DNA of 63,831 bases, the filler included, from Reticulomyxa filosa (Eukaryota > Protista > Foraminifera): NCBI GenBank assembly GCA_000512085.1. It is 17 parts of 17 records of this genome, joined end to end, with 100 filler letters (N's around TTAATTAATTAA, not from the genome) between each part and the next. Parts side by side here need not be neighbours in the genome. Positions count along the whole stretch, not along the records: positions 40,973 to 47,711 come from ASPP01009029.1; 16 more parts are not named here. The stretch is one strand, 5' to 3'. The translations under genes were made by a program, and so were the position numbers. Of this stretch, positions 40,873 through 47,916 are shown piece after piece (the first letter of the stretch is position 1; each line of letters starts with the position of its first letter). The notes beneath the pieces are model-generated. The model was not told where the DNA came from. It saw only the letters and a list, made by a program, of their open reading frames with translations, and ran no database searches.

Positions 40873-41667
40873 NNNNNNNNNNNNNNNNNNNNNNNNNNNN
40901 NNNNNNNNNNNNNNNNTTAATTAATTAANNNNNNNNNNNNNNNNNNNNNNNNNNNNNNNNNNNNNNNNNNNNTTTTTTTTTTTTTTTTATTGACTTTTGC
41001 AAAAAGCTTAAACGCATGAGAGCAAAGGGAGTACGACGGAAAAACAAACAAGATATTACATGTCGGCCACCGTTGGAATAGTCAAAATTTCGTTGATCGA
41101 GATTATAGTTGCCACCTTCTTTTGAATGGACACAAACAAAAACCTTATATTACTACTTACAAGGGTAATCACAAAGACATCCCCGTCGCTTTTGTTTTCC
41201 GTTGTCCCAAACCTTTGCTCTTTCCTGGATAGTAACCTTGCGTTGAAAATGTTGTAAGACCTGAAGCGTTTCCTTGAAACTGCGTTTGCTGAGGTATGAA
41301 CTCCAAAAAGTTTGAGGATTGAAAAAATGATGACATAGAAGGTTTTAGGAAGGGAGTTTTGCTTTTTTTTTTTTTATGGACCGGCTGACTAAAAACTATA
41401 ATAAGAGTTTCAATTTTTTTGTCCCTACCGAAATACATTGCACAATTGAAACACTGGCAATTTTGCCATTAGTATGTTTTTGTCCAGTAAGCACAATATT
41501 AGTACAGGAGCTTGGTCCAAGGTAATTTTTTTTTTTTTTTTTTTGGAAATAGTATGTATATTGAAAAAAAAAAAAATCCATGCTTTGCAATTTCTGCAAC
41601 AAAGACGGATTAACCTTGGGAAAGAAAAAGCATTGATTAACTTGAGAAAAGAAATAAAAGAGTGGCA

Positions 41668-43623
41668 ATGTCACTGTGGGAGAAAATGTTCCGTCGCAAG
41701 CCGATAGAGCGACTGGTGGAAGTGACGGAGCGTCCGACAAGTATAATAGACGAGGAGCATGCAACAGGGAAGCTTCGTCGTGTGTTGGGAGTGACGGACT
41801 TGATAACATTTGGGATATCATCATGCGTGGGTTCAGGAATATTTGTGATAGCAGGCGTGGCGGGCAAGCATGCAGGAGCAGGTTTGTTTCTGTCGTTTAT
41901 AATCGGTGGCGTGAGCTGTTCATTTTCGGGTTTGTGTTACTCCGAATTTGCGACGCGAGTGCCCGTGTCCGGCAGCGCATACACGTACACATACTGTGCA
42001 TTGGGAGAAGTGTTAGCATTTTTAATCGGCTGGGACCTGACATTGGAATACGGGATCAGCGCAGCGACAGTGGCACAAGGATGGTCAGGTTATTTACGAA
42101 CATTGTTGTTGAGCTGTGGGGTCGAAGATAAGTATTTGCCATGGGTGTTATTTGGGAAATATGTGAACAGTTTTTTCACCATTAACATTATGTCCGGCAT
42201 TTTGATTGCACTTTGCACGATGCTATTAATGTATGGCGTACGCGAGTCCGCAAGATTCACGAATGTAATCACGGTATGGAATATTGTGCTGATTGTAGTA
42301 TACGTAATTGCAGGAGCGTTTTTTGTGGACACAAACAACTGGTATCATCCTTGCGATAATGCGTCGTATGGCACGAGGTGCAACAATAAAGGGAATGAAC
42401 ACAATAGCTTCTTTCCTCAGGGCTTTCGAGGGGTCGTCCGCGCAGCGGGCATTGTATTCTTCAGCTATGTAGGCTTTGATGCCGTCAGCTGCTTGGCCGA
42501 AGAAACACAAAACGTTCGCAAAAATATGGCGCTGGGCATTTTGGGAACGCTGGCCATTGCCACCACCTTGTACATTGGCGTGTCACTCGTGTTGCTGGGA
42601 ATGGTCCCGTTCACTGCCTTGGATGAACGGTCGCCATTAGCTAATGCCTTCGAGGTACATCATCAACCCGTTCTTGCTGCTATTGTCTCGTTTGGCGCAC
42701 TCACGACCACTTGTGCCACCACGCTCACCTCGCTCATTGGACAGCCGCGCATCTTCTATCGGATGGCCAAAGACGGCCTGTTCTTCCCCGTCTTTGCCAC
42801 TATCAATCCTCGCTTTCATACTCTTGTTCATGGCTCCTTGCTCTCTGGCACTATCGCTGCTTTGATCGGCACTTTTATCAATTTCGATTTGTTGGCACAA
42901 ATGATCTCCGTGGGCACTTTAATGGCTTATATTCTAGTTTCTTATTTTTTTATTATTATTATTTTTTTTTATTTTTTGATTTTTGTACTGCAATAAATAA
43001 ATATGTATGTATGTATGTACATGATTATAGATTTGTGGTGGTATCATAATCCTACGCTACCTTTATCTGTCACTGAATTATCGCATAGCGTGGTTGCAAC
43101 CAACTCCAAGTTGGTATGGATGGTTGTCTTGTATTCTCTGACGTGCATTGGAATTGGCTTTACGTTGGACCAGTTCACCTATACCACTGCAGACTGGGTT
43201 GTCTTGTCTCTTTTGATTGTTTGCGCCTTGACATGTTTTGCTTATTTTGTGTATGTTCATTACCATTGCAAAAATCCTTATATCACCAGCAATGTGTTCT
43301 TATGTCCGTGTTGTCCTTTCATCCCTGCTCTGGGCATTTTCACCAATTCTTATATGATTGCCTCTTTGGAGTGGGATTCCTTTGTCCGTGTCGTTGTATG
43401 GTTTCTTGTCGGGCTCTCGATTTACATCTTTTATGGCTCTAAGCACTCCACTCTAAATACTGTCACTGGCCTCGGCGCGAAAAGGACCCTTTCTCAATTC
43501 CCTCTCGTCACAAGCTCTTCTCTGGACGTTGGTAACGAGGCACAAGATGCAAATATTGAACTGGAGTCGTTGTCCTCTGACTCCAAACCTGCCAATACGG
43601 ATGGTGCTGTGGATGCTGAATGA
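41668..43623 (+). CDS. Cationic amino-acid transporter (APC superfamily, CAT/SLC7 type); apparent 1-nt frameshift near 43061
   Basis: Motifs GSGIF, YSEFATRVPVSGSAYTY, FFSYVGFD, QPRIFYRMAKDGL, GTLMAY|ICGGIIILRY (intron 42937..43030) and C-terminal CPCCPFIP...YIFYGSKHS. Confidence 0.93.
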
Positions 43624-44204
43624 CTTGTTTTACAAAACGTTTTTTGTCTCGCTATACATGGAAAAAGTTTAAAATAGAATGTGAAACGTGCATAACTTTT
43701 TTAAGGCTATTAATTGTTATTTAATAAACATCATTTCGTATCACAGTTGAGCCAGTTTCCATCCTGTTTTATGATCCATTGACAATACGTTAATGCGGAT
43801 ACACTAGTATTAGTTCGAAATTATAAAGATTACATGTTCTCCGGCAATAGGCGAACTTGTGATGTGAGGTTAATGTTGTCATAGATTTAAGGAAACATTG
43901 AAAATCTCTAAATTCAAATTTTTACAGCATTTATTGCTTACTTCAAAATATATTACTTAAACAATGTAAGCCCCACAAATTGATTAAAAACAAACAAAAA
44001 TTTGTTTAAATCTCGTCTTATTACAAAACGCCGTTTTAAGGCTATTTTTTTTCAAACATTATATAACAAAAGTGGAAAGGACAAACAAGAAAAAGACAAG
44101 TTTGGTGTCGACGAGGCATGCTTGCCTTCCTTTCTTTCATTTTAAATGCATGTATTACTTGAATATAATTTTGATAGTGCTCTTTGCAAAAAAGCTTATG
44201 TCTC

Positions 44205-46285
44205 TCAGTGATTAGAGAGGTAAACATCATCACTCAATCTTTTCACTTTTCTTTTTGCCCTCATTGTTTCCTCATGCGGTTCTCCAAATGTGGCACTGTA
44301 AGTTTTATATGCTTCTTCGTAATATATCAAAGCTATATCATTTTGATTTTTGTACTCAAATGCCATTCCTAAGTCCCAACAAGAAGTACCAACTATCTGA
44401 TCTGAGTATCCAAATATGCTTTTTCGAATATTCAATGCGTTCTTATAGCACTCAATCGCTTTATCATGTTGTTTATTATTTTTATAATTCGTTCCCAAAC
44501 TGTAATATGACCAAGCAACGTCAGCGTGATTGATATCGTGAGTATTTAATCGTATTTTTAATGAGAGTTCAAAATATTCTTTTGCATCTTGATAATCCTT
44601 TTGAGAACATGAGCACGCTAAGTTATAATATAATTGTGCGCCAAAGGGAAAGTTGACGCCATAGCTACCTATTATAACCCTTAGCGCTTTTTCAAAAGCA
44701 TGTATTGCACTATCATAATCTCGTTTGTTGTAATATCTCAGTCCAAGCATATTATAAGAGATGGCAACAAAAAGGTGATCAGCTCCAAGAGTGTCAATCG
44801 AAAATTGTAAATGTCTTTCCAAGTGATTAATGGATTTACTCAAATATCTGTCTTCGGTACACTTTTCTTCTTCGTATTCAATGGCACGCAGTTGTAATGG
44901 GACATCATGATGTATTTCCATGTTCCATTTGATAATAGAAAGGGACTGTCTCAATTGTTGATCGATCCTGGCATTCGCTGTAACAAATAATTGCGTTGTA
45001 ATCTTTGTATATCCCTTGCATTGGAGTTCACAATCAATGGCATATGCATTTCCGTCAATATTTATATCTTGCAATAGAATCGCTTTTCTTTTTATTACAC
45101 ACACAAGATAATCTTCAAAATCCTTTATATCATCTTCGATATTATTTACAAGATTCAAAAGTGAAGAAAGGTTATCATTTCTATTTTTCCACTTTAATGT
45201 ATTATACGCAACAACAATCAATCCCTGTTCATGTTCGCTTAGCATTGCTTTCACTATTTTCACCGCTTCTGCGTTTGCTTTTCTCCACAGTCTGTTCCAG
45301 TGATTTTTGAAATCCAAAGTTTCTGGAATATGATTCTTGTCACGCTTTAAAGGTTCATATTTGACATCGTAGGTATTTGTGTTCTGGATCTGTTCCTTTA
45401 AGAATGATCTCGGAACCAAATGAAGGGCAAAAGGAAGAGTCGAAGCAGTTTGAATAAGCTCCCTTCCCACTGTTTTATCGAACACGATTTGAATGGTCTG
45501 TTTAATTAGAAAATCAAAGGTCCCTTTGCTATCGCTTTCAATAAGTTGATACAATGCTTGAGCAAAGTTACTGCTTTTTCAATATCTTGATTATATTTTT
45601 TGGAACAATATGTCGAAGTTGTCACAAAAATGGCAAAGATGTCAGATTCGATAATATTGGATGGCTTGTTTCGTATTGTTTCATTGTCAGAATTAATCCT
45701 ATTCAAATGAAATATCTCTTCTCCTTTGTGTCCAATTTTTATAAATATCTTTGGTTTGCCAATAAAATAATCTGTCTTTTTCACAAAGTCGTTTTGAATG
45801 TCTTTGAGATGCTTTATCTTCCCATCACTTGTAATCAAAATGTTTTCATTTATTTCATTTGTTCCATACCCACACCACACAAAAATTAATCCATCATAAC
45901 CATTGACCTTGTTCTTTTCATTATCCAAACCATGTTGTAAAATGAAATTATTCAATTGATGCAAGGTAAGTGATTCGGTACTCGCATTTTGTGAATTGTA
46001 AGTGCTACACACTTCATAACCAAATTTTGATTGGAATAACGCTTCAAATATATAAAGTTCATGTCTCACGTTTTCTAGGTGTTGTCGTTGTTGTTCATAT
46101 TCAATTGCTCCAGCTAATAATATCAATGGATGTTTCATTGAATAAGATTGCAATCCTTGCTTTTTTATTTCACTTTCGTTGACTTCAACAGAACAATCAA
46201 TTCTCTTCTGTTCTGATGTCACGTCCGAGGGCATTACTGTACGCATTTTTGTTCCATCATTTACATAGACTTTGAATGACGACAT
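44205..46285 (-). CDS. Intronless pseudo-caspase (peptidase C14-like) + unknown domain + TPR-repeat protein; one frameshift at ~45575
   Basis: YDGLIFVWCGYG and GKPKIFIKIGHKG align with the caspase His and Cys motifs. The p10-like (G)SNFAQAL appears after a one-base shift. Four-plus 42-aa TPRs (e.g. HADVAWSYYSLG...ALNIRKSIFG) lie at the C-terminus. Confidence 0.75.
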
Positions 46286-46833
46286 TCCGCAAAGTGGTAA
46301 GCACCTAAAATTTCAACATTTTTTTTGTCCCATGGGAATGATCCTTTTTCGAGTTTGTAAACTTAAAGTTGTATTCAGATAATGACTTTTTTTTCTTTTT
46401 TTACCATTTCTTCAAGAATAATTAATTTTACAACAAAAAATACTAGTATTTCTTATAAACTATACTTTGTCTTGTTTTTTTTTGTGTGTTTTAAAAATAT
46501 TTAGCATTTTTGTTATTGTATTAATACTTTATAACTACTGTGTTAAGTAGTTCAAATGACAAAAAGCAATATCTAAAGATAGTTGAAAGTATTTAAATAA
46601 ATATAAAAATCAAGCTGTTAATTGTGCAAGTTTATATATATCTTAAAAAATCAGCGAAAATGTAACTTGCACGCACAATAGCGTCAAAACAAAAACCAGT
46701 AAAATTTGAAAACGCAAAAAACTGGTTAAAGTTTGTTTGGAAGAGGGGCAACTGTCTTTGTAAAAATCAAACTTAAAAAGTGGGTAGTGTTAACAGTGTA
46801 AAGATTCCTTGGTGTTGTGCCTTTCTCTAAGAC

Positions 46834-47510
46834 ATGTATTCAGCAACAATATTTTTTATAATCTGGACATGTGTGATTGAATTCGTTTGCTTGCCAATGG
46901 TGTGTTATCGCACGTACCGGCTTTGGCGGTTTCGAAGCACGATTTTTTTGAAAAAGCGGTACTATCCGATATTGCAAATGGTGTACATAATATTGATAAT
47001 AGACTTGGGATCAACAAGTTTATTATATTTTTCATCAGAAGTAATTCCAATGCCACCAATATGGGCTTTCTTGCTTGGAATAATATTTTATCCTATTTGT
47101 GACTTATCGACCAATGCTTGCATGTATGTACTGTTGTTGAGATATTGGATGGTATGTTTTGATTTGAACTATGCCTTGTTTCAATTGGATAATCAATGGA
47201 AATCGGGGATTAACAAAAAGTACCTGGAAAAAGAGAGTGAAAAGAAAATGTGGTATCACCGACACAGACATACGTTCGGAAATTATTCATGGATGAAACG
47301 GTTCACGGCTGTCGTATACGTAGTGCTTGCAACAGCGAGTGCTTTTCTTTCAGTTGGTAGGGTGGCAGAGAACCACGGTCGATTGCACACCAACTTTCTT
47401 GAAAACATATCCACTATATTCCAATACGTGCATACCGTACTGATCATGGTCGTGTGCTTTACTATTTATTCGCTCTCGCCTCGCTTTCAAGCACGCTGTT
47501 TATTAAGCGT
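46834..47510 (+). CDS. Multi-pass (7TM-like) membrane protein, exon 1; possibly 7TM-RGS type
   Basis: About five hydrophobic helices in 225 aa, with FLKKRY after TM1 and LLRYW after TM3. Truncated by an intron and the contig edge, so no RGS domain is visible. Confidence 0.6.
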
Positions 47511-47916
47511 TTCGCAAACATTTTTATTGCTATATATACATATATATATATACATGTATATATGTTTAAATTGGCGTGTGTATATATAAATATATAAAGA
47601 CAGTTGCTAATCTAAAAACTTAAAGATGATGTGTTTTTAAAAAATTTGGGGAGAGGAGAAAATGTTGCAAAAAAAAAAAAAAAAAACAAATTAGACTACA
47701 ATGTATACAAANNNNNNNNNNNNNNNNNNNNNNNNNNNNNNNNNNNNNNNNNNNNTTAATTAATTAANNNNNNNNNNNNNNNNNNNNNNNNNNNNNNNNN
47801 NNNNNNNNNNNAAAAAAAAAAAAAAAAAAAAGACCTTACAAATATATAATAGTACGTATATAATATGTTTATATTTGTGTATACGTTATACGGTCACAAA
47901 AAAAAAAAAACAAAAC

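Follow-up and report, generated by a model that had tools for sequence, protein, structure and literature searches.

A caspase homologue with a replaced catalytic dyad, a family-specific middle domain and a TPR array in the foraminiferan Reticulomyxa filosa

Introduction

Caspases proper are usually seen as an animal invention. The best-known exception is the foraminiferan Reticulomyxa filosa, with which caspase trees are now routinely rooted. Its caspase-like proteins group with animal caspases and not with metacaspases (Klim et al. 2018, PMC5982838), and one of them, ETO10778.1, serves as outgroup in later caspase phylogenies (PMC10959488). Tetratricopeptide repeats (TPRs), catalytic residues or a catalytic dyad, and pseudo-enzymes are not mentioned in Klim 2018 (PMC5982838). 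The subject of the present analysis is a single R. filosa gene, RFI_12454, deposited in GenBank as a hypothetical protein. The gene was located on the minus strand, 46285..44205, in an R. filosa contig of 6,739 bp (40973-47711); positions are those of the window, by which is meant the whole stretch of 63,831 nucleotides that was analysed. A previous reading of this DNA by a model, made from the sequence alone and called the sequence-only reading below, had described the locus as a pseudo-caspase fused to a TPR array and to a further domain of unknown kind.

Several described systems combine some of these properties. The pseudo-caspase cFLIP carries a Tyr at the position of the catalytic Cys and acts with caspase-8. 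In CHAT-TPR proteins (Caspase HetF Associated with TPRs), for instance TPR-CHAT/Csx29 of type III-E CRISPR, the TPRs form the regulatory or partner-binding part. The bacterial pseudo-orthocaspases have Tyr/Ser instead of His/Cys and are kept as a conserved class (PMC6426788). In the literature searched on R. filosa and foraminifera, no description was found of a fusion to a middle domain and TPRs, of the size of the family or of a widespread loss of the dyad. The existence of a caspase-like group in R. filosa was known, and the TPR and middle-domain architecture together with the family-wide loss of the active site are new in that they are undescribed in the literature searched.

Results and discussion

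Caspase homology and loss of the catalytic dyad

RFI_12454 was found to be covered by two open reading frames (ORFs) on the minus strand, 46285..45506 (259 aa, frame A) and 45554..44205 (449 aa, frame B), with an overlap of 49 nt. The C-terminal ORF was 100% identical to the GenBank protein (P0001, 668 aa). The downstream frame starts right after a TGA at 45581-45579 and the upstream frame ends at 45506, and the switch between the two is therefore confined to the 76 nt from 45581 to 45506. This zone opens with the run GAAAAAGC (A5, 45575-45579), to which the frame switch was assigned by family alignment. Bridging the break with an X gave a read-through of 695 residues, in agreement with the intronless protein of about 690 aa that had been read after repair of one frameshift. 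The scripted read-through carried the X at the break, and frames A and B were sent to the search tools separately. All peptides quoted in the sequence-only reading were located in the ORFs, the sole discrepancy being that '(G)SNF' is SSNF. The analysis showed a truncated leader, an animal-type caspase-fold domain, a family-specific domain of 150 aa and four TPR units of the kinesin-light-chain type, in a protein of cytoplasmic type (Table 1).

The N-terminal part of RFI_12454 alone gave no match in Pfam and no match in the PDB. An alignment was made of 26 paralogue domains and the two pieces of RFI_12454 (alignment A1, 28 members), and its profile matched 55 distinct PDB sequences at E<=1. All 55 were caspases, including Dronc (5.8e-4), caspase-3 (from 2.7e-3), caspase-7 and an ancestral caspase-6, and no metacaspase, paracaspase or gingipain was found at that threshold. 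PF00656 was matched individually by 10 of the 28 members, with a best E of 3.6e-10. Paralogues with an intact dyad scored 47-70 bits towards PF00656, for which the cut-off is 21.4, and the highest score was that of P0044 (70.2 bits). In a language-model atlas, Peptidase_C14 was assigned to 29 of the 30 nearest clusters, and a profile search of representative proteins graded unbroken into proteins with the HG...ACRG motifs. A match to caspases, the lack of which had been named as an outcome fatal to the proposal, was thus obtained through the family profile. Of the two Pfam results that had been expected, TPR_12 was found directly, and peptidase C14A was reached by way of the family profile and not by a Pfam match of the N-terminal part itself. 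Sequence homology showed the N-terminal domain to be a caspase homologue (peptidase C14, clan CD) with a predicted caspase fold. It can be placed closer to the caspases (C14A) than to the metacaspases or paracaspases (C14B); the sequence-only reading had favoured the true caspases or paracaspases over the metacaspases.

The order of a p20-like part followed by a p10-like part was kept in RFI_12454, with a GSWF-type helix after the linker. The alignment of hidden Markov models (HMMs) covered caspase-3 from GKPK..QACRG to DGSWFIQSLC..ILTRVN, and the counterpart in RFI_12454 was GKPKIFIKIGHKG ... SSNFAQALYQLIE ... FLIKQTIQIV. In these alignments the family Tyr in WCGyG sits on the catalytic His of Dronc, and the family Tyr in KPKIFIKItyk sits on Cys163 of caspase-3. 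RFI_12454 was found to have Tyr140 in the His column (WCGYG) and His186 in the Cys column (KIGHKG), exactly the two replacements that had been read from the sequence before. The Gln of QACRG is replaced by Ile. With Tyr140 and His186 in the dyad columns, RFI_12454 should be classified as a peptidase C14 homologue and not as an active peptidase, and the caspase-like domain is predicted to be dead by the caspase mechanism.

An expanded family in R. filosa

Residues 45-240 of P0001 were used in a word search, which gave 27 proteins, all from R. filosa; several of these had a precomputed PF00656 match or were named 'Peptidase C14 caspase domain-containing protein' in UniRef. Among 1.84 billion representatives, the exhaustive profile search gave 425 matches at E<=1e-3, and the number fell to 146 at a limit of 1e-10 and to 55 at 1e-30. 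Scores above 150 bits were used to define a close family (54 representative clusters) and scores of 115 bits or less to define distant relatives (n=94). All close-family members checked by name were from R. filosa, and the intermediate matches were of metagenomic origin or belonged to the foraminiferan Bolivina argentea. The closest paralogue of RFI_12454 was less than 60% identical. The number of TPR units per family member varied from 1 to 16, and the expanded protist family with varying TPR copy number that had been suspected was thereby observed.

In the close family the His column contained Y in 28 members, H in 20, N in 3, R in 2 and G in 1. The Cys column contained Y in 28, C in 8, W in 4, N in 3 and other states in the remaining 11, two of these being gaps. 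Both His and Cys were kept in 5 of the 54, for example at the RFI_25175 locus, so that members retaining the dyad, for which a search had been proposed, do exist. Among the 94 distant relatives, His was present in 76, Cys in 71 and both in 67. The usual pairs after loss of the dyad were Tyr/Tyr or His/Tyr, and the Tyr/His pair of RFI_12454 was unique in the close family. The family consensus at the Cys position is Tyr, which is more indicative of selection for this state than of decay at random.

In a quick maximum-likelihood tree the R. filosa proteins formed a single clade (SH-aLRT 99) within a set of relatives that have an intact dyad, and the few intact R. filosa members were dispersed within this clade. 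RFI_12454 was found on a poorly placed basal branch with a length of 0.74, compared to a median of 0.6; the truncated model was used in this tree. From the protein models it appeared that an intact His/Cys pair never occurs together with TPRs, and this idea was rejected since the pattern was caused by split gene models. At the DNA level, the caspase-like part of the P0044 (VWCGHG, KIGCRGE) and P0043 loci is immediately followed, in a different frame, by the middle domain and a TPR array, and P0053, which has an intact dyad, also has the middle domain. Members with an intact and with a dead dyad have one common architecture. As RFI_12454 is one of at least 50 paralogues, animal-type caspase folds appear to have diversified in a protist, and mostly as non-enzymes.

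Some of the distant relatives with an intact dyad were found to be fused to NACHT (P0078, metagenome), WD40 (P0068, metagenome) or SPRY (P0098, Bolivina argentea) and, weakly, to a TRAF zinc finger (P0056, R. filosa). Such fusions are typically seen in proteins of recognition and death signalling. Two family genes were observed in tandem on one R. filosa contig (L003, 2521-4008 and 4994-7600). P0020 of this pair is complete, the upstream P0002 consists of the middle domain and 7 TPR units, and a caspase-like remnant upstream of P0002 was not detected in L003.

Middle domain, TPR array and N-terminus

The unknown domain that had been noted between the caspase-like part and the TPRs was found to be a domain of 150 aa, conserved in 32 aligned paralogues (alignment A2) with 8 invariant positions, all of which are kept in RFI_12454. 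Its HMM had 59 matches among 176 fetched proteins, none of them in metagenomic or Bolivina relatives. AlphaFold2 (AF2) modelling with the A2 alignment gave a mixed alpha/beta domain (pLDDT 76.3, pTM 0.76), consisting of a long helix followed by about seven strands and short helices. A profile search of the PDB gave no relative (best E 0.03), nor did a Foldseek comparison of the model with the PDB (best E 0.6). VIA-align of the model towards 48,161 chains gave a best Z of 4.0 and none at Z>=5, and in the atlas the comparison by shape did not exceed TM 0.40 and that by features gave nothing usable. The middle domain is accordingly without a detectable relative outside the family, which does not in itself prove a new fold, as A2 is a shallow alignment with sequences of a single species.

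No P-loop or Walker A motif was seen on reading the middle-domain sequence, and the lack of this motif argues that the protein does not belong to the NLR/STAND type. Pfam searches of RFI_12454 gave no match to NACHT or NB-ARC and none at E<=1 to a death-effector or other death-fold domain, and CHAT (PF12770) was matched neither by RFI_12454 nor by the 28 family members. PADLOC returned nothing for RFI_12454 and, for one paralogue, only generic TPR matches.

The C-terminal part matched TPR_12 with 98.4 bits (cut-off 30.1, E 2.6e-28) and TPR_10 with 73.1 bits (cut-off 27.5, E 1.3e-20) in Pfam. A family unit HMM resolved four TPR units of 41-42 aa after a capping helix, which agrees with the 42-aa TPRs previously noted. 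The closest natural solved TPRs in the PDB were those of the kinesin light chains 1 and 2 and of LGN.

Most paralogues start with a domain of about 80 aa (e.g. P0015:1-95 and P0028:1-90), for which only sub-threshold matches to GRHL1_C, of ubiquitin-like fold, were obtained (best E 1.7e-4). An intron follows this domain in the paralogue loci inspected. RFI_12454 retains just the first ~19 residues of it, and the same is seen in P0024. P0039, a partial R. filosa member, has about 390 extra residues (1-390) before the usual N-terminal domain.

Proposed function and alternative explanations

The best overall explanation, to which a little more than an even chance is given, is that RFI_12454 encodes a multidomain, non-catalytic adaptor made of a caspase fold and TPRs, with cFLIP-like pairing, and that the gene is probably intact. 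The protein would be unable to cleave peptides by the caspase mechanism and would more likely work as a non-catalytic adaptor. By analogy, a protein or peptide would be bound by its TPR array. As in other pseudo-caspases, a dimer interface and a substrate-groove-like surface would be retained in the dead caspase fold, which could pair with the intact paralogues and thereby activate or restrain them, following the logic of cFLIP and caspase-8. The observation made in the sequence-only reading was confirmed, and the testable parts of its interpretation were supported. A cFLIP-like decoy role and a sensor role for the TPRs are putative, and 'immune-like' is a tentative label. As an NTPase domain is lacking, the protein is not NLR-like in the strict sense.

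RFI_12454 retains 35 of 39 highly conserved caspase-domain positions, the range among the paralogues being 34-39, and has one lesion and no nonsense codons in 2.1 kb. A six-frame HMM census covered nine full family loci. Three of these were in a single frame (P0018, P0020 and P0024), four, RFI_12454 included, had one frame change and two had two frame changes. Over approximately 6,250 aligned codons, the nine loci together had 8 frame changes, but internal nonsense codons were absent, a pattern that fits indel-type assembly error better than neutral decay and suggests indel errors in assembly GCA_000512085.1. An error of assembly is a likelier cause of the frame change in RFI_12454 than a true lesion, and the organism therefore probably carries an intact gene. 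A lone pseudogene without intact paralogues had been considered as a possible outcome, and with regard to the paralogues it did not occur, as P0018, P0020 and P0024 are intact at the DNA level.

Some points speak against an intact gene encoding a cFLIP-like adaptor. An A/T run of at least 5 was found in 6 of the 8 junction windows, which is not clearly above chance, and RFI_12454 has such a run about every 116 nt, so the association of junctions with runs adds little. Frame changes in 6 of 9 loci would also suit a family rich in young pseudogenes. RFI_12454 is missing most of the N-terminal domain and carries a unique Tyr/His pair, which is a possible mark of a decaying copy. The single-sequence AF2 model of frame A alone had a pLDDT of 34, and the fold of the caspase-like domain therefore rests on sequence homology. 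Heterodimerisation and binding of a ligand by the TPRs are drawn purely by analogy.

The strongest alternative, although still unlikely, is that RFI_12454 is a young pseudogene. A real loss of one base in the A run would then end translation at about 259 residues, and the gene would be a decaying copy in a birth-and-death family. The presence of the frame change in the deposited assembly, the one or two frame changes in six of the nine loci, the truncated N-terminal domain and the unique pair at the dyad positions are all in line with this. It is opposed by the single lesion in 2.1 kb, by the lack of nonsense codons in nine loci with 8 frame changes, which is the pattern expected of indel-type sequencing error, and by the conserved positions, which are retained to the same degree as in the paralogues. 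The branch length relative to the median, obtained even with the truncated model, also speaks against decay.

It is doubtful that the protein is a non-catalytic scaffold without a link to cell death or defence, in which the TPRs dock cargo or cytoskeletal partners and the dead fold is a binding module unlinked to the active paralogues. Such a role would suit the similarity of the TPRs to those of the kinesin light chains 1 and 2 and LGN, the lack of an NTPase, death-fold or other signalling domain in Pfam and PADLOC, a middle domain unmatched by Foldseek, VIA-align and the atlas, and the fact that R. filosa is a transport-rich giant cell. However, a likeness of TPR_12 and TPR_10 to kinesin light chain is to be expected of 42-aa TPRs in general, and the distant caspase-like relatives are fused to NACHT, WD40 and SPRY, which are recognition and death-system architectures. 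Furthermore, active and dead members share one architecture, suggesting joint action.

An extension of the adaptor explanation, regarded as equally doubtful, would be a recognition or cell-fate system of R. filosa that works without an NTPase. Dozens of TPR pseudo-caspases would act in it as ligand-specific partners that switch on or block the few intact paralogues, which have the same architecture, by heterodimerisation. The logic of cFLIP and caspase-8 would be used here as a receptor repertoire, independently of animals, and the middle domain would serve in oligomerisation or signalling as a module of a new kind.

The GenBank model spans the break with a 74-nt GT..AG intron, by which the peptide SSNFAQALYQLIESDSKGTFDFLIKQ is cut out of the annotated protein P0001 and 26 helix codons are lost. 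The stretch homologous to SSNFAQALYQLIESDSKGTFDFLIKQ was in frame in all paralogues, with the consensus S.FTE.FCQ..E.N.N.SL..IIKQV, and this consensus matched the caspase-3 helix DGSWFIQSLC...ILTRVN in the HMM alignment. Three readings of the break were scored towards an HMM made from the paralogues only. The read-through scored 269.9 bits and aligned end to end, the annotated intron model scored 234.0 bits, i.e. 36 bits less, and was split into two pieces, and the frame-B piece by itself scored 37.2 bits at positions 186-243. The 74-nt stretch had an exon-like composition, whereas the intron of the neighbouring permease gene is T-rich. Because the paralogues show that the 74 nt encode a core helix, and because of the difference between 269.9 and 234.0 bits, the reading with one frameshift is preferred, and the intron is judged to be a gene-finding artefact; frame errors are often patched with introns by gene finders. 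It is very improbable that the GenBank model is correct and the protein is one of 668 aa minus the conserved helix, despite the GT..AG ends, a length usual for a short intron and the standing of the deposited annotation.

An activity as a hydrolase through other residues, such as the nearly invariant Cys138 of WCG (Cys kept in at least 90% of the family) or His186, which occupies the nucleophile position, is considered the most improbable of all, for the WCG Cys position, being Ser, Cys, Ala or Leu in distant intact relatives, is not conserved as a catalytic site would be, many different residues (Y, W, N, F, S, I, T, E, H) occur in the freely variable Cys column of the family, and no clan CD enzyme is known to use such alternative residues.

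Feature map and neighbouring genes

The features of the RFI_12454 locus are given in Table 1.

Table 1. Position of the features of RFI_12454 in the window, with the evidence for each
Feature	Position	Strand	Evidence and remarks
Whole RFI_12454 coding region including stop	44205..46285	-	~695 codons across one frame change; ORFs, 100% match, six-frame HMM domain map
N-terminal leader, 47 aa	46145..46285	-	Alignment with paralogues; first ~19 aa match the beginning of the paralogue N-terminal domain of ~80 aa
Caspase-like domain part 1, frame A, residues 48-237 (p20-like core, inter-subunit-like linker, first p10-like strand)	45575..46144	-	Family HMM positions 1-179, 221.6 bits
Tyr140 codon, catalytic His position (WCGYG)	45866..45868	-	HMM alignment to Dronc
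His186 codon, catalytic Cys position (KIGHKG vs QACRG)	45728..45730	-	HMM alignment to caspase-3
A5 run, one-base frame change	45575..45579	-	Sequence, junction window, end-to-end read-through alignment
Caspase-like domain part 2, frame B (GSWF...L-equivalent helix and last strands)	45405..45578	-	37.2 bits alone; aligned with caspase-3
Annotated 74-nt GT..AG intron, judged spurious	45498..45571	-	HMM scores, composition
Linker, caspase-like to middle domain	45327..45404	-	Weakly conserved, length-variable paralogue columns
Family-specific middle domain, 150 aa, mixed alpha/beta	44877..45326	-	Alignment A2, AF2 model
Capping helix	44769..44876	-	Followed by the TPR array
Four 42-aa TPR units	44268..44768	-	Pfam TPR_12 and TPR_10; family unit HMM
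C-terminal tail and stop codon	44205..44267	-	ORF end; tail aligns with paralogue C-termini

A permease gene of the cationic-amino-acid-transporter type was observed at 41662-43623 on the plus strand. It consists of two ORFs in the same frame, split by an apparent T-rich intron of about 95 nt (roughly 42937-43031), and matched AA_permease_2 (4.9e-44) and AA_permease_C (4.2e-18) in Pfam. On the other side, upstream of and divergent from the caspase-like gene, a 251-aa ORF with many hydrophobic stretches was located at 46834-47589 on the plus strand, for which no Pfam match was obtained at E<=1.

Significance

The caspase-like proteins of R. filosa are not simple caspases, as at least 50 of them are multidomain proteins with a caspase fold, an unknown domain and a variable TPR array, in which the dyad is mostly lost. 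This bears on their suitability as an outgroup, since many of the R. filosa sequences are pseudo-enzymes under constraints unlike those of active caspases. The family also concerns the origin of regulated proteolysis and of regulation by pseudo-proteases outside animals, and it adds a conserved domain without detectable relatives. In practical terms, many public models of genes in the family have been broken into two or bridged by false introns at single frame changes (L001, L002, L005, L006 and L007).

Comparison with known systems

The proteins described in Klim 2018 (PMC5982838) come from the same organism as RFI_12454 and have the same Peptidase_C14 homology, and the trees presented there agree with the finding of caspases only among the PDB matches. 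Like RFI_12454, the bacterial pseudo-orthocaspases belong to clan CD, have a replaced dyad and carry a Tyr at the His position (PMC6426788). They differ in being prokaryotic and of the C14B type with basic specificity, in the Tyr/Ser pair and in their partner domains (PMC6426788).

The NLR/STAND proteins of fungi and bacteria with TPR sensors resemble RFI_12454 in having an N-terminal effector-type domain and regular C-terminal 42-aa TPRs, the number of which varies between paralogues, and the presence of NACHT in the distant caspase-like relative P0078 adds to this likeness. However, NACHT and NB-ARC, and a P-loop in the middle domain, are absent from RFI_12454 and its close family, and the defining NTPase switch is missing. 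The CHAT-TPR proteins also have a caspase-fold domain and a TPR array in one polypeptide. RFI_12454 differs from these in having no Pfam match to CHAT, in the reversed order of the domains, with the caspase-like domain first and the TPRs last, and in the animal-type, inactive domain.

A parallel in the state of the active site is seen with the pseudo-caspases of the cFLIP-L type, in which, as in RFI_12454, a caspase fold is combined with replacement of the catalytic Cys; in RFI_12454 the His is replaced as well. Instead of the tandem death-effector domains of cFLIP, RFI_12454 has an unknown domain of 150 aa and TPRs as partners, and the loss of activity in R. filosa arose independently, in Rhizaria. 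The family consensus at the Cys position is Tyr, as in cFLIP, and the parallel extends to the presence of intact paralogues (P0044, P0043 and P0053) in the same R. filosa genome.

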